A stretch of 64,000 nucleotides of DNA from the NCBI RefSeq assembly GCF_963921235.1, contig NC_086101.1, forward strand, positions 110,112,001 to 110,176,000, read 5' to 3'. This document shows, one piece after another, positions 11,598-50,379 of this stretch; the stretch's first letter is position 1, and each line of letters opens with the position of its first letter. A program made the position numbers and the translations under genes. This DNA is from Mobula hypostoma (Eukaryota). The notes under the pieces are model-generated. The model made no database searches, had not been told where the DNA came from, and saw nothing but the letters and a program-made list of their open reading frames with translations.

Positions 11598-14316
11598 GGA
11601 GGTGATAGAGAGGAACGAGAGGCAGGTAGTCACTCTGGGGCCTGGGGAGACAGATAACTTGGTAACAGTCAGGAGAGGGAAGGGTGAGTCAGCTACCAGA
11701 GAGTACCCCTGTGGCTGTCCCCCTTAGCACTAAGTACTCCTGTTTGAGTACTGTTGGGGGGAGGGAGTGACCTTCCCGGGGGAAGCAACAGTGGTCATGC
11801 CTCTGGCACAGAGTCTGGTCCTTTGGCTCAGAACTGTAGGGAAAGGATGAGGGTGGAAGCAGTGATTGGGGATCTCTATAGTTAGGGGGTCAGACAGGCG
11901 ATTCTGGGGACATAGGAAACAAACTTGGATAGTAGTTTGCCTCCCAGGTGCCAGGGTCTGGGACACTTCTGATCGTGTCCATGATATCCTGAAGTGGGAA
12001 GGTGAACATATTAGTAGGAAAAGAGAAGGAGTTAGGAAAGAAGCTGAGAAGCGGACCACAAGGGTAGTAATCTTGGGATTACTGCCTGTGCCACGCGACA
12101 GTGAGTATAGGAATAGAGTGAGGTGGAGGATAAATGTGTGGCTGAGTGATTGGAGCAGGGGGCAGGGATTCAGATTTCTGGATCATTGGGACCTCTGTTG
12201 GGGCAGGTATAACCTGTACAAAAAGGACGGGTTGCACTTGAATCCAAGAGGAACCAATATCCTGGTGGGGAGGTTTGCTAAGGCTACTGGGGAGAGTTTA
12301 AACTAGAATTTCTGGGGGGTGGGAACCAAACTGAAGAGGCGGAGGAAGGGGCGGTTGGCTCACAAATAGAGAAAGCTTGGAGACAGTGTGAAAGGGAGGA
12401 TAGGCAGGTGATAGAGAAGGGATACGCTCAGACCGATGGTTTGAGATGAGTCTATTTTAATCCAAGGAGCATTATGAACAAAGCAGATGAGCTCAGTATT
12501 TGGAGCTATGATGTTGTGACCATTACAGAGACTTGGATGGCTCAGGGGCAGGAATGGTTACTTAGTGTGCCAGGCTTTCGATGTTTCAGAAAGATCAGAG
12601 AGGGAGGCAAAAGAGCTGGGGGCGTGGCACTGCTGATCAGAGATAGTGTCATGGCTGCAGAAAAGGAGGAAGTCATGGAGGGTTTGTCTACTGAGTCTCT
12701 GTGGGTGGAAGTTAGAAACAGGAAGGGGTCAATAACTCTACTGGGTGCCTTTTATAGACCACCCAATAGTAGCAGGGACGTTGAGGAATAGATAGGGAGA
12801 CAGATTCTGGAATGGTGCAATAATAACAGAGTTGTCGTGATGGGAGATTTTAATTTCCCCAATATTGACTGGCATCTCCCTAGAGCAAGGGGTTTATATG
12901 GTGTGGAGTTTGTTAGGTGTGTTCAGGAAGGGTTTCTGACACAATATGTAGATTAAGCCTACAAGAGGAGTGGCTATACTTGATTTGGTACTGGGAAATG
13001 AACCTGGTCAGGTGTCAGATCTCTCAGTGGGAGAGCATTTTGGAGATAATGATCACAATCCTATCTCATTTACCATAGCATTGGAGAGGGATAGGAACAG
13101 ACAAGTCAGGAAAGCGTTTAATTGGAGTAAGGGGAACTATGAAGCTATCAGGCAGGAACTTGGAAGCATAAATGGGGAGCAGATGTTCTCAGGGAAATGT
13201 ATGGCAGAAATGTGGTAATGTTCAGGAATATGAGTGTGGCATTCTGCATAGGTACATTCCAGTGAGACAGGGAAATGATGGTAGTAAGGTATAGGAACCA
13301 TGGTGTACAAAGGCTATAGACAATCTAGTCAAGAAGAAAAGAAAAGCTTTCAAAAGGTTTAAAAAACTAGGTAATGATAGAGATCTAGAAAATTATAAGG
13401 CTAGCAGCAAGGAGCTTAAGAATGAAATTGGGAGGACCAGAAGGGGCCATGAGAAGGCTTTGGCAAGCAGGATTAAGGAAAAACCCAAGGCATTCTACAA
13501 GTACAGTTTGTGAAGAGCAAGAGGATAAGATGTGAGAGAATAGGACCAATCAAGTGTAACAGTGGAAAAGTGTTTGTGGAACCAGAGGAGATAGCAGAGG
13601 TACTTAATAAATACTCTGCTTCAGTATTCACTACAGAAAAGGACCTTGGCAATTGTAGGGATGACTTATAGCCAACTAAAAACTTGAACATATAGACATT
13701 AAGAAAAAGGATGTGCTGGAGCTTTTGGAAAGTACCTAGTTTTTTAAGTCACTGGGACCAGACGAGATGTACCCCAGGCTACTGCAGAAGGTGGGGGAGG
13801 AGATTGCTGAGCCTCTGGCAATTATCTTTGCATCATCAATGGGGACAGGAGAAGTTCTGGATGATTGGAGGGTTGCAAATGTTGTTCTCTTATTCAAGAA
13901 GGGGAGTGGAGATAGCCTACGAAATTATAGACCAGAGAGTCTTACTTCAGTGGTTGGTGAATTGATGGAGAAGATCCTGAGAGGCAGGATTTATGAACAT
14001 TTGGAGAGGCATAATGTGATTAGGAATAGTCAGCATGGCTTTGTCAAAGGTAGGTCGTGCCTTACGAGCCTGATTGAATTTCTTGAGGATTTGACTGGAT
14101 ATATTGACGGAGGTAGAGACGTAGATGTAATATATGTAGATTTCAGCAAGGCATTTGATAAGGTACTCCATGCAAGGCTTATTGAGAAAGTAAGTCGGCA
14201 TGGGATCCAAGGGTCCTTGCTTTGTGGATCCAGAATTGGCTTGCCCACAGAAGGCAAAGAGTAGCTGTAGATGGGTCATATACTGCACGGAAGTTGATAA
14301 CCAGTGGTGTGCCTCA
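11598..14316 (+). mobile_element. Decayed CR1 LINE (ORF1 C-half, EN, part of RT), 3' end missing
   Basis: Broken ORFs with GDSIVRG-like esterase, DGLHLN, ITETW, FYRPP, QHGF, DFSKAFDKV; stops abruptly near GVP. Confidence 0.85.
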
Positions 14317-15309: not shown

Positions 15310-15352
15310 ATGGACGTTTCGCTCTGTCTGGTGTTGGTTCAGTTGACAGTGG
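15310..15352 (+). CDS. PILR-alpha-like triple-V ITIM receptor, exon 1 (signal peptide MDVSLCLVLVQLTV)
   Basis: ATG in strong Kozak context (gacgccATGG); 14 hydrophobic codons + G, then donor gtgagt at 15353; phase 1 joins exon 2 to give ...LTV-A-WSSGSG. Not in the ORF track. Confidence 0.88.
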
Positions 15353-16576
15353 GTGAGTAGACCCAGCTTCATTACGTACCTCCTCTATCCCCATTCCCCA
15401 CCCCTCCTCTCATCAGCCAACCCCTCCTAACACGCCCTCCAGAATACTCTCTCCGGTGCAGAACCCTCGGCACCGTTTCGAGAGGCCTCCCTCCTGTCCC
15501 GCCTCTCTAATTCAGAGAGAGAGTGTTAGTCCGTGTGATGCCTTCCCCGGCTGCAGGAACAAATGCCTGCATTTGACTAGCACCCTCACAGGAGATTAGG
15601 AACAGCTCGAAGTGCTTCCCACCCGCTAACGGGTATAAAGAGTTGAAATGAGGAACAGAAGATCCGGGAAAGGCCTGTTGCTAACGTCGGGGTTATAGGT
15701 GGAGGTTTGCTGAGGCGGAGGATTTCTTTTTTTGGAGAGAGACCATTTGTTGCGGCTTGTATAGCTGATCGGAGAGAGGGCAAGAACAGAACGGGCAGAG
15801 AGAGCTCGAAGGGCGACAGTGCGAGATCCGGGTTTTAGTTCATAACCGATTCCCGGGGATAGTTACAGGTTGGAATCCAGTAAAAGGTTTTAATGTGTTT
15901 ATACAATGAATAACAGATCCGAAGGGTTAGTGCCAGGCTGGAATCTACACACGCAGGAGCACACACACATAGTATTGCAAGGGTTAAATGCGTTTATATG
16001 GTCAATAACATTCCCGAAGTATGTAGATTCTGAAACCTAATCCCTGGGCCCAGGAGTTTAAAGCTGTGTTGCCTGATTCCCCATTGGTGGTCTTAGGCTC
16101 GGAGTGTGAAAGGGAATCGTAAAATTTACTATCGATGTAGGTAAATGTCACGATATTTCAGAATTTCAGGACAATAATGTAATAATGTAATACAATGGAA
16201 TTTATGATAATCGGCACATAAGCATAAAACTGTCAACCAATGCGCAAAGCAAGTCAAATTCTGCAAACAGAAATTTTACTGACAACTAGATTTGTAAAGA
16301 GATCTTGAAAGTGAGTGTGCAGGTGAGAGAGTGAGTTCACAGATTCAGTGTGTGAAGTTCTCCACGCCGGGTCAGGGTGCTGGTGGTTGGTAATGCGGGT
16401 CTGTTGCAATTTGGATCTAACGGGTTTGAGAGGAGAAAGAATTGTTCTGGAGTTCGGTCTGTCAATCAGAGGGCAGGGACTTGCCTGGCGCTGAGAGAAT
16501 TGCGGGCTGATTATCCGCCGGGTGAGATGTGGGTGGAGGTTCCCAAATGACCATTTGCTCCCTCCCTCTCCCTCAG

Positions 16577-16933
16577 CATGGAGCAGCGGAAGTGGCTTCC
16601 GGGTGGAGCAGCCGAAATACATCGAGGCCGTAGAGAACGAGCCCGTCACTCTCACCTGCACCTTTACCCGCCCGGAAATCTCCTCACTCCGAGACATTGA
16701 CGTTAGATGGAGAGTTCGCAATTACTACACGGCAGGTATATTCAGATATCTGAATAACCACACACACAAAGATTTCAGAGGCCGGATCAAGTTCCTGGGT
16801 TCACCATTTAGAGACAACACAGGCTCCATCCGCTTACTCCGGGTCAGAGAACTGGACAGCAACATATACTTCTGCAGTGTGGTGATCTTGGGGGAAGTGT
16901 ACACAGGTCCTGGGACCGTCCTGTCAGTTCAAG
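16577..16933 (+). CDS. Exon 2: IgV domain 1 (NKp30-like VJ-type)
   Basis: Acceptor ctctccctcag, donor gtgaga at 16934, phase 1-1. V-set hallmarks: VTLTC (B Cys), VRW (C Trp), FRGRI, DSNIYFC (F Cys), J-like TGPGTVLSV. Confidence 0.93.
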
Positions 16934-18066
16934 GTGAGAACCCCTTCCTCTGTCTCAGAGACGGTGGAGTTTGTTGCGGCTGGAGGTGTTGTCTGGGGTT
17001 GGGGAGTTGCAGGTGAGGGAGCAACGAGTGGTAAATGGAGGAAGCTACGGGTTTACGGAGTTTACATGTCTCTGTGCCGAATAAGGAATTAGACAGGCAG
17101 ACGAAGCAGATGAAACTGCGGGAGTCTCACAGACACACACAGGCACGAACACACACGTAACAATTCCTGACAGTCCGTGGTGAGAGGGGAGTCGGGGCAG
17201 GCATAATGTAATTATGTTGGATAACAGACCCCCGGGATTCAATTACTGAAGTGGATGTAACTTCGGCGCTCCGTGGGTTTATATATCGATTAAGTGATAC
17301 TTAGCTGTGAGATGCAGACGGGGATCTAATCCAGGGGTTCGGGTGTTTCGCTGCAAGAGACCCCAGAGAGTTAGTAGTGAGTGGAATCTTATCCAGGGGT
17401 TCATTGAGCTTATGTTGTGAAATACAGATTCCCAGACGTGAATTAGACGCTGTGATCTCTGAAACAATCTGGGAGTTTAATATAGAGTATAACAACTAAC
17501 CATGAGTTGGGTATGGACCAGAATCTAATCTGGTGTTCAGATTGTTTGCCTAACAATGCACAGATGCCCGGGAGTGAGTTGCAGACTGGACTACAATCAA
17601 GGGTTCAGAGGTTTTATATTTCGAAATATATGCCCAGAGAGAGTTTCAGGCTGTGACAGGTTGTTTGGACTTCGGGATTATATATAGATAACAAATTCCC
17701 ATCTACGTGTTACACGTTGTGATCTAATTCAAGAGTTTAAACGGTCTTTGTTGAGAATGGCAGGACCCCAAAAGTGAGTTTGATGCTGACATGCAATCTC
17801 GGGGCACAGGGGTTGATGTCTGATTTGCCTAATTCCCGATTGGTGGTCACAGGCTTGGAGAGAGGACGATGCTAGCGGTTAGGAATGGGGACTTGTTTTC
17901 AGTAAGCATTTGATGGATTTGGAAGGGGAAGGATTTAGTCCGGAAGTTAGTTTATTAATCAGAGCGCAGGGACTTGTCTGTTGCTGAGACTATTATGGGA
18001 TGGTTTTCCGCCGAATGAAATGTGATAGGAAGTTCCCGAATGATCGTTTGCTCCCTTTTCCCTCAG

Positions 18067-18441
18067 CACGGACCGGTAGCCGTGAGTTCCGGGTGAAGCA
18101 GCCGGGGTACCAGGAGGCTGCAGAGAATGGGTCCGCCATTCTCCCCTGTTCCTTCACTTACCCGGACACTTATACACCCAGAGACATTCATATCACTTGG
18201 AGAGTGAGTGGGTTTCATGGTGCAGAGATATTCGATTCTTCACGAAACAACGCATTCGGGGAATACCGAGGCCGGATCGAGTTCCTGGGCTCCCCATTGC
18301 GAGACAAGACGGGCTCCATCCGCTTACATCGGCTGAAAGGAAATGACTCCAATTTCTATGTCTGCCGTGTGACAATTTTGGAAGATCATCGGAAGCCGAC
18401 TGGATGGCAAAGCATCTCAGGGACGTTTCTGTCAGTGAGAG
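18067..18441 (+). CDS. Exon 3: IgV domain 2 (PILR-like)
   Basis: Acceptor ttttccctcag, donor gtgagt at 18442, phase 1-1. ILPCSF, ITWRVSGFHG, DSNFYVCRV, WQSISGTFLSV. Confidence 0.93.
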
Positions 18442-19105
18442 GTGAGTCCTGAATCCTTAGCCTGACCTCTGCTCTTGTCTGAAGGTTCTTTCAATTAATC
18501 CCTGTGCATCAACCCAGCTTCATGTCTTCACATTCTCATCCTGCAGGAGGTCAGTCCATCACATCCATACTGACCGATTGACTGCCACCCGCATTAAGCT
18601 CACCTCCGGGGGTTCGTCCCTCACCTGTGCCTGGATAGTTCAGGTATTGGTGTAGATAATTCCGAAAGGATGTCAGTGACTGCTCCGCCCCTCTCTCTCT
18701 GGCAGTGGGTTCCAAATACTCACCGCTCTCAGTGTGAAACTTCCTTCTCAGACCCCCTCCAAATCCCTTAAACTGCACCTTTATGTTTTATCAAATATTA
18801 CCTGTAATCTACCCTGTCTCTGCCCTCATGGGTATGTGTACCTCAATCATGTTCCTGCACAACCATGTCCTTTCATGACATGTAATCTAGGGGCTCAGGG
18901 TTCGATGCCTGGTTTGCCTAATTCTCCACTGATAGTCACAGGCTTAGAGAATGGACGATTTAGTCTGGATTTATTCTGCATTGGTCTAGTTCATGAATCA
19001 GAGTGCAGGGACTTGTCTGCTGCTGAGAGTATTATAGGATGGTTTTCCGCCGAATGAAATGTGATAGGAGGTTCCCGAATGATCGTTTGCTCCCTTTTCC
19101 CTTAG

Positions 19106-19480
19106 CACGGACCGGTAGCCGTGAGTTCCGGGTGAGGCAGCTGGGGTACCAGGAGGCTGCAGAGAATGGGTCTGTCATTCTCCCCTGTTCCTTCACTTAC
19201 CCGGACACTTATACACCCAGAGACATTCATATCACTTGGAGAGTGGGTGAGTTCTTTGGTACAGAGATATTCGATTCTTCACGAAACAACGCATTCGGGG
19301 AATACCGAGGCCGGATCGAGTTCCTGGGCTCCCCCTTGCGAGACAAGACGGGCGCCATCCGCTTACATCGGCTGAAAGGAAATGACTCCAATTTCTATTT
19401 CTGCCGTGTGAGAAGTTTAAATGATCATGATAAGCTAACTGAATGGCAAAGCATCTCGGCGACGTTTCTGTCAGTGCGAG
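19106..19480 (+). CDS. Exon 4: IgV domain 3 (PILR-like, duplicate of V2)
   Basis: Acceptor ttttcccttag, donor gtcagt at 19481, phase 1-1; open frame, 27 nt differences from exon 3 by my count; DSNFYFCRV, WQSISATFLSV. Confidence 0.9.
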
Positions 19481-20699
19481 GTCAGTCCTGAATTCTTACC
19501 CTGACCTCTGCTCTTGTCTAAAGGTTCTTTGATTTCATGGTTTGATGTAGTTTCTCACGATTTATTTCCTGTGCATTGACTTAACTTTATGTTTTCATAC
19601 AGCAAGGACGCAGTCCCCTCCACCCATTATGTCCATGCTGACTCTTATCCGCATGAAACCTGTCTCCCGCCACTTGGTTACTCACCTTTTGTCCCTGGGT
19701 AGTTCAGGTACTCGTCCAGACGCTTCCTTGATGCTATCACTGACTCCGCTTTTTCAGGCAGAGTGTTCCAGGTGCTCACCACTCTGTGGTTCTCCCCACC
19801 CCCATCACCTCTACCCAATCACCCTAAAATTGAACTCGCAAGTTTTATTTACTTCTGACATGAGTGTCCTGTAGTCTATACCTCTTATAATTTTAAAGAC
19901 CTTATACATATGTCCCTTCGAAATCTCCTCAACTCCAGGGACAATTGACCTGGTCTCTGCTCATCACTGCAGCTCCATCCCAGATTACATCCTGTGAAAC
20001 TCTCCACCATCTCCAGCACTACCTCTGTTTGACAATACTCAATATTTTCCTACCATTGGTGCTGTGTGTCCTGTCCTAGTGGATACTGGCAAAATATATC
20101 GCCTCACATGGATCTGGATTGAACTCCACCAGCCACTTGCCAAATACAATAGATTCTGCAGACGCAGAAAATCCAGAGTAACACACACAAAATGCAGGAG
20201 GAACTCAGCAGGTCAGGCAGCATCTATGGAGGGGAATAAATAGCCGATGTTTTGGACAGAGATCCTTCTTCAGGACTGGAAATTAATGGGGAAGAAGCCG
20301 GAATAAGAAGGTGAGGGGCGGCGAGGAATGAGTACACGCTGGCAGATGGCCGTGTCTGGGTGCGGTCACGGTTGAAGAATCAGAGAGCAGCAGAGACAAC
20401 AGATGGGAAGCAGTGGGATGAGGCCCTGTGGGAGAGATGACTAAACTTCTCCAGAGTAGGCATACCCTGAAGAGAGATTGCGGTGGTTCATCAAATTATA
20501 AACACAAGATTCTGCAGATGCTGGAGGAACTCAGCATGTCAGGCAGAATCTATGGAGATTTCTCAGACCATTTCATCAAAACATTCCCCATAGCTAACAC
20601 TTCCCTCCACACTGCCAACATCTTCACCCATCTTTGTGTCATCTGAAAACTTACTGATCACGCCTTCGACATCCACATTCAGATCAGTCATATGCACGC

Positions 20700-21095
20700 A
20701 GAAGCCACTTTATTAAGTACACCTGCTTGGTAATTCATGTATTTAATTAGCTAATGATGTGGCCGCAACTCAATGCAGACATGGTCAAGAGGTTCAGCGG
20801 TTCAGCCCAAACATCAGAATGTGGAAGAAATTTGACTGCTGAATGATTGTGGTTCCAGAAGAGGCAGTTTGAGAATCTTAGAAACTGTGGATCTGCTGGG
20901 ATTTTCACTCAGAACAGTCAGTCAACGTCAGAGGAGAATGGCCAGATTGGTTCAAGTTGTCAGGGAGGCATTCACAACAGGTGTTTCAACAGTGGTGTGC
21001 AGAAGAACACCCCTGAACGCACAACACACCGAACCGTGAAGTGGATGGGCTACAGTAGCAGAAGACCATGGACATACACTCAGTCACCACTTTAT
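20700..21095 (+). mobile_element. Tc1-like MITE, degenerate copy
   Basis: gccactttattaagtacacc ... gtggatgggctacagtagcagaagacca, same family as 24921-25462. Confidence 0.65.
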
Positions 21096-22109
21096 TTGGC
21101 ACAGAAGCTACAAGATAAAGTGGACACTGAGCGGCAAGTTGGATCCTAATGCTTTGAGTCCAAAGGTACTTCAGAAGTCAAGAATCAGGCATAAATCCTG
21201 CTAATGATCATCTCATTTGATATTACAAGAGCAGAAAATGGACAAGAAAGAGGAGCTTAAAAAAAAACAAAGAAATGGTCAAAGGGAAAAGCGGTTGTAA
21301 TCACCTCAGTGATTACACAATCTCTAGTGTCAAAGACTAGAGATAACTCAAATTCCAGTGATAACAATTAGCCCATAAAAGACAAACACAAGAAATTTGG
21401 ATGCTGGAAATCTAAAGCAGCTCACAAAAAAATTGCTGGAGGAACTTTACAGGTCAGGCAGCATCTATGGATATGAATAAATAGTCAACACTCTGGCCGA
21501 GTCCCTTCTTCAGGGCTGGAGAGTATAAGGGGAAGACGACAAAATAAAAGGTGGTGGGAGGGAAAGGAGGATAGCTGGAAGGTGATCGGTGAAGCCAGGT
21601 GGGTAGGAAAGGTAAAGGGTTGGGGAGGAAGGAATCTGATCGCAGATTGGACAATAGATGAAAGGGATGGAGGATAGAACCCAGGGGAGGCAATAGCCAG
21701 GCGAGAAGAGTTAAGGAGCCAAAGTGGGGAATTGAAGAAAAGGGTAGAGGGTTGTTTTTTTTTCTAGCAGCAGGAGAATCGATATACATGCCATCAGGTT
21801 GTAAATAATTTATATTTAATTAATATATTTCTTATGAATGTTTTGTGCCTGATGCTACATGCCTGTGATGCTGTTGCAAATTAGTATTTCATTATACCTA
21901 TGCAGATGACAATAAACTTGACTTTGACCCTTCTCAAAAAACAAATGCTCCCTCTTTGTGGTGAACCTGCCCTGGGCATTTGAAGTGGCAAGTTCTTCAT
22001 GGCTACTGACCAGGAGCAACACATACCCTCCTTAACATGGGAGGGGTAGTTCAAGGAGTAGAGATTGCAGAAGGCAGGCTAATCACTTCTCTGCTTGAAA
22101 TCTTCACAG

Positions 22110-22229
22110 CCGGATCAGCTGACCCCAGGGGCAGTCCGACCTTGCTCTACACCCTTTTGGGGGTCTGTGGGCTAGCACTATGTGTCGGACTGGTCTTCGG
22201 GATTTGGATCATCAAGAGAAAGAGAAGTG
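22110..22229 (+). CDS. Exon 5: short linker + transmembrane helix + basic stop-transfer
   Basis: Acceptor tcttcacag, donor gtgagt at 22230, phase 1-1; GSADPRGSP-TLLYTLLGVCGLALCVGLVFGIWII-KRKRS; no charged TM residue. Confidence 0.92.
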
Positions 22230-22244
22230 GTGAGTAATTCTCCA

Positions 22245-24836: not shown

Positions 24837-24864
24837 GGAATATAAAGAAAGAAAACCACAATCC
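24837..24864 (+). CDS. Exon 6: 28-nt cytoplasmic micro-exon (GNIKKENHN-P)
   Basis: Long polypyrimidine tract (ttttcttccttgtctgtctctcgacag), donor gtgagt at 24865; phase 1 to 2, compatible with exons 5 and 7. Confidence 0.75.
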
Positions 24865-25779: not shown

Positions 25780-28700
25780 AGCATAGGGTCATACAGCACT
25801 ACAGCACAGGAACAGGCCCTTCGACCTGTCTAATCCATACCAAACTATTATTCTATCTGGTCCCATCGACCCACACCTTGACCTTAGCCCTCCATACCCC
25901 TCTCAACTGTGTACTCATCCCAATTTCTCTTAAGTGCTGAAATTAAAGCTGGCAGCTCGTTCCACACTCGCACTACCCTCTGGGTGAAGAAGTTTCCCCT
26001 CAAGTACCCCTTAAATCTTTCACCCTTAACCCATGACCTTCAGTTCTGTGGAAAAAGCATGCCTGGATTTACCTTGTCTACATTCCTCATACCTTGAGCA
26101 AGGCACTTAATCACACAGTGCTCTGCGACGACACTGGTGCCAAGCTGTATGGGTCCTAATGCCCTTCCCTTGGACAACATTGGTGTCATGGAGAGGGGAG
26201 ACTTGCAGCATGGGCAACTGGTAGTCTTCCATACAACCTTGCCCAGGCCTGCGCCCTGGAGAGTGAGAACTTTCCAGGCGCAGATCCATGGTCTCGCAAG
26301 ACCAATGGATTCCTTATAGTTTTGTTGTATCTCCTCTTCAAATTCTACATTCCAAGGAATAAAGTCCTAATGTGTTCAATCTTTTCTTATAGCTGATGTT
26401 CTCCAGACCTAACAAATTTTCTCTGTACTCTTTTAACCTTGTTTACATTTTTCCTGTAGGAAGGTGACCAAAACTGCACTCAATATTCCAAATTAGGCCT
26501 CACCAACATCTGATACAACTTCGACATAACATCCCTGTACTCAGTACTTTGATTTATGAAGGCTAATGTGTCAAAAGCTCCCTTTATGACCCTATCTGCC
26601 CGTGACATCACTTTCAATGAATTATGTACCTGTATTCCCAGATCCCTTTGTTCTACTACACTCCTCAGTGCCCTTCCGTTCCTGTGTAAGACCTATCCTG
26701 GTTGGTCCTATTAAAGTGCACTTCTCTGCATTAAATTCCATCTGCCATTTTTCAGGCTATTTTGCCAGCTGGTTCAGATCAGCTGCAAGCTCTGATAATT
26801 TTCCTCGCTGCCCACTGCACCCCCAATCTTGGTGTCATCCACAAATTTGCTGATCCAGTTAACCATATTATCCTCCAGATCATTGATATAGATGACAAAC
26901 AACAATGCACCCAGCATCACTACCTCCACTAGTTACAGGCCTCCAGTCAGACAGGCAACCATCTACTACCACTCTCTGGCTTCTCCCACAAAGTCAACGT
27001 CTAATCCAATCTACTACCTCATCATCGATGCCAAACAACTGAGCTTTCATGACCAACCCCACATGTAGGACCTTGTCAAATGCATTGCTAAAGTCCATCC
27101 ACTGTCTTGCCTTCATGAGCTTCCTGGTAATTTCTTCAAATACTCTATAAGATTGGGTAGACATGACACACCATGTACAAAGCCATGCTGACTATCTCAA
27201 CCAGTCCAAATCTATCCAAATACTTATATACCCAGTCTCTTAGAATACCTTCCAATAGCTTCCCCACTACTGATCTCAGGCTCACTGGCATACAATTTCC
27301 TGGTTTATTTTTGGAGACTTTCTTAACCAGCAGAACAACATTAGCTATCCCCCGATCCTCTGGTACCTCACCTGCCACTAAGGATGATTTAAATATCTCT
27401 GCTAGGGCTCCTGAAATTTCTGCACTTGCCTCCCACAGGAACACCTTATCAGGCCCTGAGGATTTAGCCACCCCAATTTGCCTCAAGACAGCAAACACCT
27501 TCTCCTCTGTAACCTGTGTTGGGTCCATGACTTTGCTGCTGCTTTGCCTCACTGTTATAGATTCTGTGTCTGCCTATTGAGTAAATACAGTGGCAAAAAA
27601 ATCAGTTTGAGATCTCCTCCATCTCTTTTGGCTCCACATATAGATTACCATTCTGATCTTCCAGAGGACCAATTTTGTCCCTTGCTATTCTTTTGTTATT
27701 AACATATCTGTAGAATCCCTTAGGATTTGCATTCACCTTGTCTGCCAGGGCAGCCTCATGCCTTCTTTCAGCCCTCCTGATTTCTTTCTTAAAGGTTCTC
27801 TTGCTTTTCTTATACTCCATAAATACCTCATTTGTTCTTATCTGCCTATACCTGCTATGCACCTCCTTTTATTCTTAACCAGATTCCCAATATCTCCAGA
27901 AAACCAAGGTACCCTAACCCTATTATTTTCACATTTTTAATATGACAGGCACAAGCAAGCTTTGTACTCTCAAAGTTTCACATTTGAGGGCCTCCCACTT
28001 AACAAGTACACATTTGCCAGAAAACCACCTGTCCTAATTCACACTTGCCAGATCCTTTCTGATACCATCAAAATTGGGCTTTCTCCAATTTAGAATCCCA
28101 GCCTGTGGATCAGACATATCTTTTCCCATATTTAGATTATGATCACTAGTTACAAAGTGTTCCCCCACACAAACATCTGACACTCGCATTGTCTCATTTT
28201 ATAATCGGNNNNNNNNNNNNNNNNNNNNNNNNNNNNNNNNNNNNNNNNNNNNNNNNNNNNNNNNNNNNNNNNNNNNNNNNNNNNNNNNNNNNNNNNNNNN
28301 NNNNNNNNNNNNNNNNNNNNNNNNNNNNNNNNNNNNNNNNNNNNNNNNNNNNNNNNNNNNNNNNNNNNNNNNNNNNNNNNNNNNNNNNNNGGAAACTTTT
28401 CTGAACACATTTGACAGACTCTTTCCCATCTAGTACTTTTACAGTATGGGAGTCCCAGTCAATATGTGGAAAGTTACTATTTCCACTGTAACAGACTTGT
28501 ATTTCTTGCAACAATCTGTAATCATTATCCAGATTTGTTCTTCTAAATCCCATGGACTGTTGGCTACTCTATAGTTGAGCACTATTAACGTGGTCATACC
28601 TTTCTTATTCCTCAATTCCACCCATAAAGCCTCTTTAGATGAGTTCTCAAGACTGTCCTGACTAAGCACTGCAGTGACACTTCCTAGTACCACCGCCCCT

Positions 28701-34686: not shown

Positions 34687-34733
34687 TGTGCCAGCTGTAG
34701 GTGGAGACAAGAACGTTCGTCAATGTCAGGAAG
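34687..34733 (+). CDS. Exon 7: 47-nt cytoplasmic exon (VPAVGGDKNVRQCQE)
   Basis: Acceptor tttcactttttcacag, donor gtacag at 34734; phase 2 to 1, open in the required frame. Confidence 0.7.
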
Positions 34734-41259: not shown

Positions 41260-41312
41260 ATGCCTCTGGGTCGCCTCAGAATTATGACATGCCTAACATC
41301 GTTGCTGCTGAG
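41260..41312 (+). CDS. Exon 8: 53-nt cytoplasmic exon (DASGSPQNYDMPNIVAAE)
   Basis: Acceptor gattatatttcag, donor gtaaaa at 41313; phase 1 to 0, exactly bridging exon 7 to the phase-0 last exon. Confidence 0.72.
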
Positions 41313-42609: not shown

Positions 42610-43758
42610 TTAGAAACATAAAAAGCCTACAGCACAATACAGGCCCTTCAGCCCACAAAGTTGTGCTGAACATGCCCCTACCTTAGAAATTACTAGGGTT
42701 ACCCATAGCCCTCTATTTTTCTCAGCTCCATGTTCCTATCCAGGAGGCTCTTAAAAGACCCTATCGTATCCGCCTCCACCACCGTTGCCAGCAGCCCATT
42801 CCACGCACTCACCACTCTCAGTGTAAATAAACTTACCCCTGACATCTCCTCTGTACCTACTCCCAAGCAGCTTAAACCTGTGCCCTCTTGTGGCAGCCAT
42901 TTCAGCCCTGGGAAAAAGCCTCTGACTATCCACATGATCAATGCCTCTCATCATCTTATACACCTCTATCAGGTCACCTCTCATCCTCTGTCGCTCCAAG
43001 GAGAAAAGGCTGAGTTCACTCAACCTATTCTCATAAGGCATGCTCCCCAATCCAGGCAACATCCCTGTAAATCTCCTCTGCACCTTTTCTATGGTTTCCA
43101 CATCCTTCCTGTAGTGAGGTGACCAGAATTGAGCACAGTACTCCAAGTGGGGTCCGACCAGAGTCCTATATAGCTGCAACATTACCTCTTGGCTCCTAAA
43201 TTCAATACCACGATTGATAAAGGCCAATACACTGTATGCCGCCTTAACCACAGAGTCAACCTATGTAGCAGCTTTGAGCGTCCTATGGACTTGGACCCAA
43301 GGTCCCTCTGATCCTCCACACTGCCAAGAGTCTTACCATTAATGCTATATTCTGCCATCATATTTGACCTACCAAAACGAACCATCTCACACTTATCTGG
43401 GTTGAACTCCATCTGCCACTTCTCAGCCCAGTTTTGCATCCTATCAATGTCCTGCTGTAACCTCTGACAGCCCTCCACACTATCCACAACACACCCAAAC
43501 TTTGTGTCATCAGCAAACTTACTAACCCACCCCTCCACTTCCTCATCCAGATCATTTATAAAAATCACAAAGAGTAAGGATCCCAGAACAGATCCCTGAG
43601 GCTCACCACTGGTCACCGACCTCCATGCAGAATATGACCTGTTTACAACCACTCTTTGCCTTCTGTGGTCAAGCCAGTTCTGGATCCACAAAGCAATGTC
43701 CCCTTGGATCCCAAGCCTCCTTACTTTCTCAATAAGCCTTGCATGGGGTACCTTGTCA
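42610..43758 (-). mobile_element. 5'-truncated CR1 (RT C-terminal half + 3' tail)
   Basis: ORFs 43182-43772 and 42751-43251: DKVPH, QGSVLG, KFADDTK, HLEYCAQFW. Confidence 0.9.
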
Positions 43759-43785
43759 TCTTGACCTCCCAAACTACTTGGTCAT

Positions 43786-46490: not shown

Positions 46491-46579
46491 TTGAAATGAA
46501 TAAATATTTTGCATCAGTCTTCCATGTGGAAGACACCAGCAGTATGCTGGAAGTTCAAAACTGCCGGGGGCAGAAGTGA

Positions 46580-47880
46580 GTGCAGTTGTTCTACTAGGGA
46601 GAATATGTTTGGGAAGCTGAAAGGTCTGAAAGTAGATAAGTCACTTGACCCAGATGGACTGCAGAACCCCAGGGTTCTGAAATATATAGCTGAAGAGAAC
46701 GTGGGGGCATTATTAATGAACTTTCAAGAACCACTAGTCTCTGGCATGGGTCTGGAGGACCGGAAAATTGCAAACGTCATTCCACTCTTGAAGAAGGGAG
46801 GAGAGAAGCAGAAGAAAGTAAATGATATGTCAGTTAGTCTGACCTCAATGGTTGGGAAAGTGTAGGAGTCGATTGTTAAGGATGAGGCTTTGGAGTACTT
46901 GGAGGCACATGATTAAATAGACTGAAGTCAGGTCAGCATTGTTTCATCAAGGGGAAATCTTGCCTGACAAGTCTGTTGGAATTTTTTGAGAAAATAGCAA
47001 GCAGGATAGATAAAGGAGAAACAATACTTGGATTAGGCGTACTTGGATTTTCAAAACGCCTTTGACAAGGGGCCACACATGTGGCTGCTTAGCAAGATAA
47101 GAGCCCCCAGTATTACAGGAAAGATACTAGCATGGATAGAGCATTGGCTGATTGGGTGGAGGCAAAGAGTGGGAATAAAGGGAGCCTTTCATGATCACAT
47201 GCCAGTGGGTAGTGGTGTTCCACAGGGGTCAGGGTTGGGACTGCTACTTTTTCCATTACATGTCAATGATCTGGATGACGGAATTGATGGCTTTGTGGCA
47301 AAGTTTGCAGATGATATGAAGATTGGTGGAGTGGCAAGTCAGTGGCAACATGAATACATTGTTGAGAAGTGTATGGTCATGCACTTTGGTAGAAGGAATA
47401 AAAACATAGACTATTTTCTAAACAGGGAGAAAATTCAAAAATCTGAGCTACAAAGGGACTTGGGAGTCCTTGTATAGGATTTCCTAAAGGTTTACTTGCA
47501 GGCTGAGTAAGTGGTGAGGAAGACAAATGCAATGTTAGTATTCATTTTGAGACGGCTAAATATAAAAACAAGAATGTGATGCTAAGGCTTCATAAGACAG
47601 AGGTGAGACCTCACTTGAGAAGTTTTGGGCACTAAGAAAAGATGTGCTGACGTTGGAAAGGGTTCAAAGAAGGTCCTTGAAAATTATTTCTGCAATTGAA
47701 CGCCTTAATATATGAGGAGCGTTTGATGGCCCTGGGCCTGTCCTCAGTTCCTCCAGCGTGTCGTGAGGGATAGTTTCTTGATTAGTCAGGGTGTGAAAGG
47801 TTATGGGCTTGAGAGGGAAATGGATCAGTCATAATGAAACTGCAGAGCAGACTCAGTGGGCATAATTCTGCTCCAATGTC
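46580..47880 (+). mobile_element. Decayed CR1 ORF2 fragment
   Basis: KSLDPDG, DFQNAFDK, GVPQGS, KFADD. Confidence 0.8.
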
Positions 47881-48425: not shown

Positions 48426-48557
48426 GACGAGAGTCCGGAGGGGATTGTCTACTCAGTCGTACAAGCCAAGGGGAGACCAAAAGCAGTCAGAAACGTCGCC
48501 TGTTCAGAAGAGAAATGTCTCTACGTAGCTGTTAAATTCAGGGCTGAGACTCAGTAG
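48426..48557 (+). CDS. Exon 9: terminal coding exon with two ITIM/ITIM-like motifs
   Basis: Acceptor gtacctctcttgcag; DESPEGIVYSVVQAKGRPKAVRNVACSEEKCLYVAVKFRAETQ*; IVYSVV at 48444-48461, CLYVAV at 48516-48533; TAG at 48555-48557. Confidence 0.88.
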   Translation, partial: DESPEGIVYSVVQAKGRPKAVRNVACSEEKCLYVAVKFRAETQ

Positions 48558-49365: not shown

Positions 49366-50379
49366 TAAGTCATAGTCATACTTTATTGATCCCGGGGGAA
49401 ATTGGTTTTCGTTACAGTTGCACCATAAATAATTAAATTGTAATAAAACCATAAATAATTGAATAGTAATATGTAAATTATGCCAGGAAATAAGTCCAGG
49501 ACCAGCCTATTGTCTCAGGGTGTCTGACCCTCCAAGGGAGGAGTTGTAAAGTTTGATGGCCACAGGCAGGAATGACTTCCTATGACGCTCTGTGCTGCAT
49601 CTCGGTGGAATGAGTCTCTGGCTGAATGTACTCCTGTGCCCAACCAGTATATTATCTAGTGGATGGGAGACATTGTCCAAGGTGGCATGCAACTTAGACA
49701 GCATCCTCTTTTCAGACACCACTGTCAGAGAGTCCAGTTCCATCCCCACAACATCACTGGCCTTATGAATGAGTTTGTTGATTCTGTTGGTGGCTGCTAC
49801 CCTCAGCCTGCTGCCCCAGCACACAACAGCAAACATGATAGCACTGGCCACCACAGACTCGTAGAACATCCTCAGCATCGTCCGACAGATGATAAAGGAC
49901 CTCAGTCTCCTCAGGAAATAGAGACAGCTCTGACCCTTCTTGTAGACGGCCTCAGTGTTCTTTGACCAGTCCAGTTTATTGTCAATTCGTATCCCCAAGT
50001 ATTTGTAATCTTCCACCATGTCCACACTGACCCTCTGGATGGAAACAGGGGTCACCGGTGCCTTAGCTCTCTTCAGGTCCACCACCAGCTCCTTAGTCTT
50101 TTTCACATTAAGCTGCAGATAATTCTGCTCACACCATGTGACAAAGTTTCCTACCGTAGCCCTGTACTCAGCCTCATCTCCCTTGCTGATGCATCCAACT
50201 ATGGCAGAGTCATCCAAAAACTTCTGAAGATGACAAGACACTGTGCAGTAGTTGAAGTCCCAGGTGTAAATGGTGAAGAGAAAGGGAGACAAGACAGTCC
50301 CCTGTGGAGCCCCAGTGCTGCTGATCACTCTGTCGGACACACAGTGTTGCAAGCACACGTACTGTGGTCTGCCAGTCAG
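49366..50379 (-). mobile_element. Rex1/Babar LINE, 5'-truncated, in or just after the receptor 3' UTR
   Basis: 283-aa open RT C-terminus (GAPQGTVLSPFLF, KFLDDSA, YKYLG); (catagt)n tail. Confidence 0.9.

Follow-up and report, generated by a model that had tools for sequence, protein, structure and literature searches.

An NKp30-like outer V domain of PILR descent in a multi-V receptor gene of the devil ray Mobula hypostoma

The stretch of DNA analyzed here (the window) comprises 64,000 nucleotides (nt) from the devil ray Mobula hypostoma (NCBI RefSeq assembly GCF_963921235.1, contig NC_086101.1, positions 110,112,001 to 110,176,000 of the forward strand) and carries three V-set exons, which we call V1 (the outermost, 16577-16933), V2 (18067-18441), and V3 (19106-19481). 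These exons, the intron element, and the other exons of the gene lie on the plus strand, and features are numbered by their position in the window. Very probably, the three exons arose in the ray lineage by tandem duplication of a single PILR V exon in an inhibitory PILR-alpha-like gene, in which V1 lost its lectin site and came to resemble NKp30 by convergence. A preliminary description of the window had read V1 as an NKp30-like domain and V2 and V3 as PILR-like domains, and had proposed that NKp30/XMIV and PILR may share a recent common V exon. We found that V1 is a PILR-descended domain and not an NKp30-type one, and it gives no evidence for a recent exon common to the two families.

Results

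V1 is placed in the PILR family

Profile scores, a maximum-likelihood (ML) tree, and Foldseek comparison of the V1 structure model each favored PILR over NKp30. A homologue search with V1 against 1.8 billion representatives returned 197 matches at E values up to 0.001. The nearest of these are predicted ray proteins with a V1-type first and a V2-type second domain (Mobula hypostoma, M. birostris, Hypanus, Hemitrygon, and Pristis), and several of the ray homologues are named PILR alpha or beta by NCBI. Single-V PILRs from chimaera, skates, and sharks rank next, ahead of the tetrapod PILRs. Among the best 150 of the 197 matches, no V1-type domain was found outside rays.

In a careful ML tree of 76 domains, the V1-type domains (100/84), both domains of a stingray paralogue from Hemitrygon (P0003), and the V2-type domains form a single ray clade, so that all three domains of the window fall into one family with strong support (99/89), an outcome that the preliminary description itself had named as refuting its reading. 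This clade is sister to the single-V PILRs of skates (98/86) and lies within the PILR family (96/96); the NKp30-like domains of sharks and frogs form a distinct clade (93/94). A larger tree of 200 domains gives the same picture. Regrafting the V1-type domains onto the NKp30-like stem in a fixed topology costs 88.5 log-likelihood (lnL) units and is rejected by all tests. The NKp30-like set consists of shark and frog proteins that have NKp30 as their best solved match, together with the Mobula VJ protein P0040, which serves as a VJ-type control only, its best solved matches being antibodies and SIRP and not NKp30. A search with the NKp30-like domain of P0046 returned three shark proteins only and no named NKp30.

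V1 scores 108.7 bits against a profile of non-ray PILRs and 51.4 bits against the NKp30-like profile, and over strands A to F the corresponding scores are 102.4 and 36.1 bits. Nor is V1 nearer to NKp30 than V2 is, as the kinship proposed for it would have it: identity to NKp30-like domains is 27.1% for V1-type and 26.2% for V2-type domains (24.7% versus 25.6% over strands A to F), and in comparison with human NKp30, V1 reaches 27.8 bits and V2 31.6 bits. In phmmer, V1 aligns with NKp30 over its full length at E 2e-5. The V1 model (predicted local distance difference test score [pLDDT], 89.9) has its highest TM-score among named receptors with PILRA (TMq 0.84), followed by sialoadhesin (0.83), and reaches 0.68-0.73 with NKp30. 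In the reverse direction, PILR does not appear among the best 60 solved matches of the NKp30-like proteins.

V2 and V3 retain the PILR lectin residues

The PILR-like character that had been ascribed to V2 and V3 was borne out. V2 matches human PILRA over its full length, the WQSIxGT end included (E 2e-14), and the six best solved matches of its model in Foldseek (pLDDT 91.3) are PILRA and PILRB, with TMq values of 0.82-0.85. By family, NKp30 ranks second among the solved matches of V2 (E 1.4e-6). The equivalents of human PILRA R72, F76, G78, R126, W139, and Q140 are all retained in V2, and likewise in V3. The F-strand arginine that corresponds to R126 is found in YVCRV of V2 and in YFCRV of V3, and both domains carry the R, F, and G of the CC' loop plus the WQS of the FG/G region. 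R126 contacts the carboxylate and is essential for sialic-acid binding by PILR, and Q140, F76, and R72 are required for ligand binding (PMC6235402). Judging from these motifs, V2, and V3 if it is used, would most likely bind sialylated O-glycoprotein ligands in the manner of PILR-alpha.

The lectin site of V1 looks different. Serine stands in place of R126 (YFCSV), WQ is deleted, and the positions of R72, F76, and G78 hold R, Y, and T; other V1-type domains have S, I, or V at the F-strand arginine site. The FG loop is six residues shorter, and the G strand reads TGPGT. Remodeling of the FG loop, which the preliminary description had inferred, thus does separate V1 from V2 and V3, and it removed residues that bind sialic acid.

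The three exons descend from one

Translation reproduces exactly the ends that had been quoted for the three domains, namely, ...FRGRIKFLGSPFRDNTGSIRLLRVRELDSNIYFCSVVILGEVYTGPGTVLSVQ for V1, ...WQSISGTFLSVR for V2, and ...WQSISATFLSVR for V3. All three exons have AG acceptors and GT donors in phase 1-1, and Pfam assigns all three to the V-set (PF07686, E 3e-13 to 5e-8). Translation, Pfam, tree, profile, and model together identify V1 as a membrane-distal V-set domain of PILR descent, and RNA contigs in four runs cover it. V2 is a PILR-type V-set domain by its translation and its sequence and fold matches, and contigs both cover it and join it to V1. V3 is a tandem duplicate of V2 with an open frame, recognized from its translation and its 92.8% nucleotide identity to V2. 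Exon identity is lower between V1 and V2 (64.7%) and between V1 and V3 (63.3%); at the protein level, V1 shares 49% with V2 and V3, and V2 shares 87% with V3.

The homology had been said to extend into about 110 nt of intron before each exon, and it does. The 110 nt that precede V1 are 80% identical to those preceding V2 and V3, and those of V2 and V3 are 94.5% identical to each other. In the DNA farther upstream, identity drops to 50-58%, with an additional homologous block of 84 nt, more distal, present for V1, V2, and V3. V2 and V3 belong to a tandem repeat with units of ~1.04 kb, and no extra V exon copy was found in the 64-kb window. The descent of V1, V2, and V3 from one ancestral exon, part of the preliminary description, is supported because they share this intron sequence and fall into one ray-only clade.

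The intron block itself (16464-16576 before V1, with further copies at ~17957-18066 and ~18996-19105 before V2 and V3) is more alike between V1 and V2/V3 than the exons are. Within it lie G-runs, a pyrimidine tract, and, ~30 nt from the AG, a TGAC that resembles a URAY branch point; the invariant parts are TTCCC, AATGA, and TTTGCTCCCT, plus the G-runs. Compared with the same positions before both sawfish V exons (L001 5486-5606 and 6712-6832), it is 78-83% identical, versus 65-70% for the neighboring intron, and between devil ray and sawfish it is conserved to the same degree as the exons. It is absent before the single V exon of the skate. The element is probably a shared 3' splice-site module. 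We also considered a coding role, since every copy has an open frame and the element is read through in one Gnomon model (P0003), but the peptide lacks a signal-like core, and the conserved blocks are better explained as G-runs, a pyrimidine tract, and a branch point.

D1-type and D2-type exons occur both in sawfish (Rhinopristiformes) and in stingrays and devil rays (Myliobatiformes), and a single V exon is present in the skate gene. From this distribution, the duplication most likely took place after the split from skates and before the split between sawfish and stingrays. In every ray orthologue and paralogue seen, the V1-type domain is domain 1; the identity of V1 is 77-91% across four myliobatiform species and 58% with sawfish D1.

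The NKp30-like end of V1 probably arose by stepwise change

The likeness of V1 to NKp30 is limited to about 18 residues. The human NKp30 string given in the preliminary description agrees with solved human NKp30 chains in the alignment. For the C-terminal 53 residues of V1, the match to human NKp30 (E 0.004) is not better than that to nanobodies or antibody heavy-chain variable domains (VH) and is worse than that to JAML. A VJ-type G strand has the form F/W-G-x-G-T; V1 reads Y-T-G-P-G-T, in which G-x-G-T is present and the preceding aromatic residue is shifted by one. At the DNA level, V1 and V2 are colinear with a single clean gap of 18 nt (six codons), past which V-Y-T-G-P-G-T of V1 lies over W-Q-S-I-S-G-T of V2, with SISGT opposite TGPGT.

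Other rays have domains in between. Hemitrygon P0003, sister to the V1-type domains (100/95), reads CS...GEEYKMWQSTSGTVLKV; it has serine for the arginine and retains the loop with its WQ (CSVTMIGEEYKMWQSTSGTVLKV). Sawfish D1 reads GEQETTAGTVLSV, in which WQ is deleted and G-x-G is missing; its strand is T-T-A-G-T, without the first glycine. Myliobatiform D1 reads GEEYTGPGTVLSV and has TGPGT. From these three states we infer that the arginine was lost first, the WQ loop second, and that G-x-G was gained last.

The third domains of frog and salamander three-V proteins carry G-x-G-T yet score as PILR (66-89 versus 28-45 bits), which suggests that the motif arises repeatedly within the PILR family. 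The resemblance between V1 and NKp30 is convergent.

Gene structure and transcripts

The exon order and the RNA contigs support a single gene for V1, V2, and V3, as had been claimed, and this gene would encode a PILR-alpha-like inhibitory receptor. Exon 1 (15310-15352) holds the start codon and the signal peptide MDVSLCLVLVQLTV and ends in a phase-1 donor, G/GTGAGT; no other hydrophobic ATG-to-GT phase-1 candidate fits the DNA before V1, and exon 1 is 93% identical to the leader of the Mobula hypostoma protein P0189. Downstream of the V exons lies an exon for the stalk and the transmembrane (TM) segment (22110-22230; AGSADPRGSPTLLYTLLGVCGLALCVGLVFGIWIIKRKRS), found by tblastn at 97.6% identity to P0189 and bounded by splice sites; the membrane span of the TM segment, LLYTLLGVCGLALCVGLVFGIWII, is free of charged residues. 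The cytoplasmic part begins with a mini-exon (24837-24864; GNIKKENHNP) that was located by peptide search and splice sites and matches P0189. It continues with the exons VPAVGGDKNVRQCQE (34687-34733) and DASGSPQNYDMPNIVAAE (41260-41312), each with splice sites and 100% identical to P0189 in tblastn. The last exon (48426-48557; 97.7% identical to P0189 in tblastn) contains an immunoreceptor tyrosine-based inhibitory motif (ITIM; IVYSVV), a second tyrosine motif (CLYVAV), and a stop at 48557. The full structure matches the Mobula hypostoma gene model LOC134346255 (P0189, 509 amino acids): V1 is 98% identical, V2 is identical within the domain (domain 3 of P0189), and identity is 98-100% in the TM segment and tail. 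Public automatic annotation already contains the family as predicted orthologues, LOC134346255 among them; in the literature library searched, there was no paper on PILR in sharks or rays.

The RNA evidence consists of contigs of four small public runs, in which the exons are covered and the introns are not. Contigs join 16931 to 18065, so that V1 is spliced directly to a V2-type exon, and the TM exon lies under contigs at 22108-22230. The V2-type part of these contigs carries the diagnostic letters (T>I, S>G, F>L, and G>R) of an additional V exon that lies in the middle of the M. hypostoma set, so the RNA must derive from an animal whose exons are arranged in this way. Contigs on V3 reach over its first 69 nt only and encode the same residues as the middle exon, which makes the assignment to V3 ambiguous. 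We withdrew a V1-to-V3 splice that had been read from an RNA joint, since those 69 nt fit the middle exon of M. hypostoma and the same contigs carry its diagnostic letters.

V3 has alanine for the near-invariant glycine of the G-strand GT and a donor GTCAGT with C at +3, and its ratio of nonsynonymous to synonymous substitution rates (dN/dS) against V2 is ~0.8; V3 may be a little-used or decaying exon. When residues 134-386 of P0189 were compared with 18067-19481, P0189 proved to have a middle V exon between V1 and the V2 orthologue, where the window has V1, V2, and V3. The first half of the middle exon is V3-like and the second half V2-like. The number and order of V exons thus vary among closely related Mobula genomes or haplotypes, a pattern to be expected from unequal crossing-over.

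Short repeats in the intron between V3 and the TM exon (20150-20240, 20500-20570, 21020-21095, and 21420-21640) attract thousands of RNA contigs, with a summed depth of 10^3 to 10^4 and more and with many joints and loose ends, as would an abundant transcribed interspersed repeat. The long introns and the flanks of the gene are occupied by what, judged by translation, appear to be reverse-transcriptase or long interspersed nuclear element (LINE) fragments (12474-14264, 27145-27862, 42751-43772, 46509-47477, and 49507-50358), and a run of N lies at 28209-28390. NKp30 is characterized by linkage to the major histocompatibility complex (MHC) and by B7H6 as a co-evolving ligand; no MHC or B7 gene was seen in the 64-kb window.

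Discussion

The duplication of one PILR V exon in rays and the loss of the lectin site in one of the copies can be put together into a model of the receptor and its history. Starting from the domain architecture, the motif content, and the V1-to-V2-type splicing, which are directly established, we picture a receptor chain that would run from the leader through V1, V2, and possibly V3 to an uncharged TM segment and an ITIM-bearing tail. V1 would have lost the arginine first and then the six FG-loop codons that included WQ, and a later gain of glycine in myliobatiform rays would have given it a G strand that reads G-x-G-T like that of a J segment. Without R126 and Q140, V1 probably does not bind sialic acid in the PILR manner, and its motifs suggest either a new ligand or a role as a non-lectin cap or spacer distal to the lectin domains. 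Signaling, by analogy with PILR-alpha, would proceed through the ITIM and SHP phosphatases.

Several points weigh against this reading. A constraint that unites V1 and the NKp30-like domains in one clade costs only 9.2 lnL units (approximately unbiased [AU] test, p 0.20), and one that also keeps the other PILRs together costs 16 (AU p 0.043). The rejection is weak in these clade-constraint tests, in which the long outgroup branch is free to move to the V1 stem and re-root the tree there; we judged them uninformative and used the fixed-topology regraft instead. The NKp30-like set holds no bona fide NKp30 orthologue from a ray, human NKp30 having been compared through PDB searches. The animal that supplied the RNA has a different middle V exon, and the contigs hence do not demonstrate the use of V3 in this genome. 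What we say on ligands and signaling is drawn from motifs throughout. Finally, when the F-G tail of V1 (its last 30 residues) is taken by itself, the NKp30-like profile does slightly better than the PILR profile, with 22.3 versus 15.6 bits.

This tail score would suit a mosaic exon, in which the body of V1 is PILR and the FG-G end was acquired by gene conversion, the donor being a VJ-type (NKp30-like) V exon at another site in the genome of the ray. The identity of the tail to NKp30-like domains, 38.8% for V1 versus 28.8% for V2, points the same way, as does the fact that, for the C-terminal 53 residues, NKp30 ranks with the better solved matches. We nevertheless consider such a conversion very improbable. 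Apart from the one 18-nt gap, the tail aligns base for base with V2, and at 44.6% it is at least as similar to the tails of shark and skate PILRs as to NKp30-like tails. The GTVLSV at its end is already present in the WQ-bearing P0003 (as GTVLKV) and in sawfish D1, and sawfish D1, with the deletion and without G-x-G, suggests that the motif was assembled stepwise; nor, as noted above, does the tail prefer NKp30 over antibody domains or JAML. That V1 might be a true NKp30/XMIV-type domain, the two families having recently split from one exon by FG-loop remodeling, strikes us as extremely unlikely. It would account for the short FG loop with G-x-G-T, as in NKp30, and for the full-length phmmer alignment, and the rank of NKp30 among the solved matches of V2 does indicate some general likeness of the families. 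The position of V1 within a ray-only clade, the cost of the regraft, and the profile and fold scores all speak against it, as do the higher score of NKp30 with V2 than with V1, the absence of PILR from the best solved matches of NKp30-like proteins, and the restriction of V1-type domains to rays among the V1 matches considered. NKp30 is an activating receptor with a charged (Arg) TM residue and a short tail without an ITIM; the ray gene, unlike it, has an uncharged TM segment and an ITIM.

A different objection is that V1 is a decaying, functionless remnant of duplication that is tolerated at the tip of the receptor. The residues it has lost, R126, W139, and Q140, are indeed those that matter for ligand binding by PILR. 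We hold this to be improbable, however, as V1 retains both immunoglobulin cysteines, the core tryptophan, and an open frame, is transcribed and spliced according to the RNA contigs, and yields a model that folds with high confidence. It is also domain 1 in each ray orthologue or paralogue seen, and its conservation among the four myliobatiform species and toward sawfish D1 argues against decay. The exon duplication within rays, followed by loss of the lectin site in V1, thus remains our preferred explanation.

Among known systems, the ray gene is closest to the PILRs. Besides the sequence match, the fold match, and the lectin residues of V2 and V3, it shares with PILR-alpha an ITIM tail and an uncharged TM segment, and M. 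hypostoma has an activating-type relative (P0151) with an arginine in the TM segment and a short tail, in the manner of the PILR paired set. It differs from PILR in having two or three V domains instead of one, in an outer domain that lacks the essential arginine and WQ and has the shorter FG loop, and in a V-exon number that varies even between closely related Mobula genomes. With NKp30 (NCR3) and the XMIV-type VJ domains of shark and frog, V1 shares the short FG loop, G-x-G-T, and an FRGR...IYxC framework, but it stands apart from them in clade, profile score (51 versus 109 bits), and fold match, and the gene differs in TM segment and tail. There is also a likeness to the V-set domains of Siglecs: V1 and V2 have a Siglec-like V fold (TMq with sialoadhesin, 0.81 for V2), Siglec-15 is among the best sequence matches, and the F-strand arginine of Siglecs and PILRs is present in V2 and V3 (PMC6235402). 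The ray gene differs from Siglecs in that no C2-set domains follow the V domains, and sequence identity is ~20-28%.

PILR-type V chains with several domains also occur in amphibians, in caecilians (P0005, P0173, and P0007) as well as in frogs and salamanders (P0011, P0015, P0018, and P0053). These PILR/Siglec-like proteins differ from the ray gene in being independent expansions, with domains that cluster by lineage and apart from the ray domains, and those of caecilians differ from V1 in having kept the arginine. The three-V amphibian proteins (P0011, P0015, P0016, P0018, P0053, and P0062, from Pelobates, Ambystoma, Rhinatrema, and Xenopus), some of which are named Siglec-like, have the PILR WQ in domains 1 and 2; domain 3 has an extra cysteine and a J-like G-x-G-T and still scores as PILR, in which the frog and salamander proteins resemble V1. 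Multi-V proteins of lampreys (P0008, P0200, and P0201, from Lethenteron, Lampetra, and Petromyzon) score 98-106 bits against the PILR profile and keep the F-strand Cys-Arg. On the strength of these lamprey sequences, PILR-like V domains may be older than jawed vertebrates.

A further-reaching idea, which we regard as rather unlikely, is that a lectin V domain was turned in rays into a non-lectin, VJ-like recognition or pairing domain through the arginine loss, the six-codon FG-loop deletion, and a newly gained G-x-G bulge, with a similar change perhaps occurring independently in the PILR-type third domains of amphibians. If this were true, the V1-type and amphibian domains would show, in natural replicates, the change from glycan to protein recognition that the preliminary description had pictured, with no bearing on the origin of NKp30.

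Our analysis removes a link between NKp30 and PILR that was tempting but wrong: PILR domains can themselves evolve a short FG loop and a J-like G strand, and neither feature is evidence of kinship. Although not a new kind of system, the gene should be of interest in comparative immunology, for those studying paired receptors and Siglec-like lectins. It offers an example in which an exon was duplicated and the outermost domain of a paired immune receptor then lost its lectin site, with the intermediates found in living rays.

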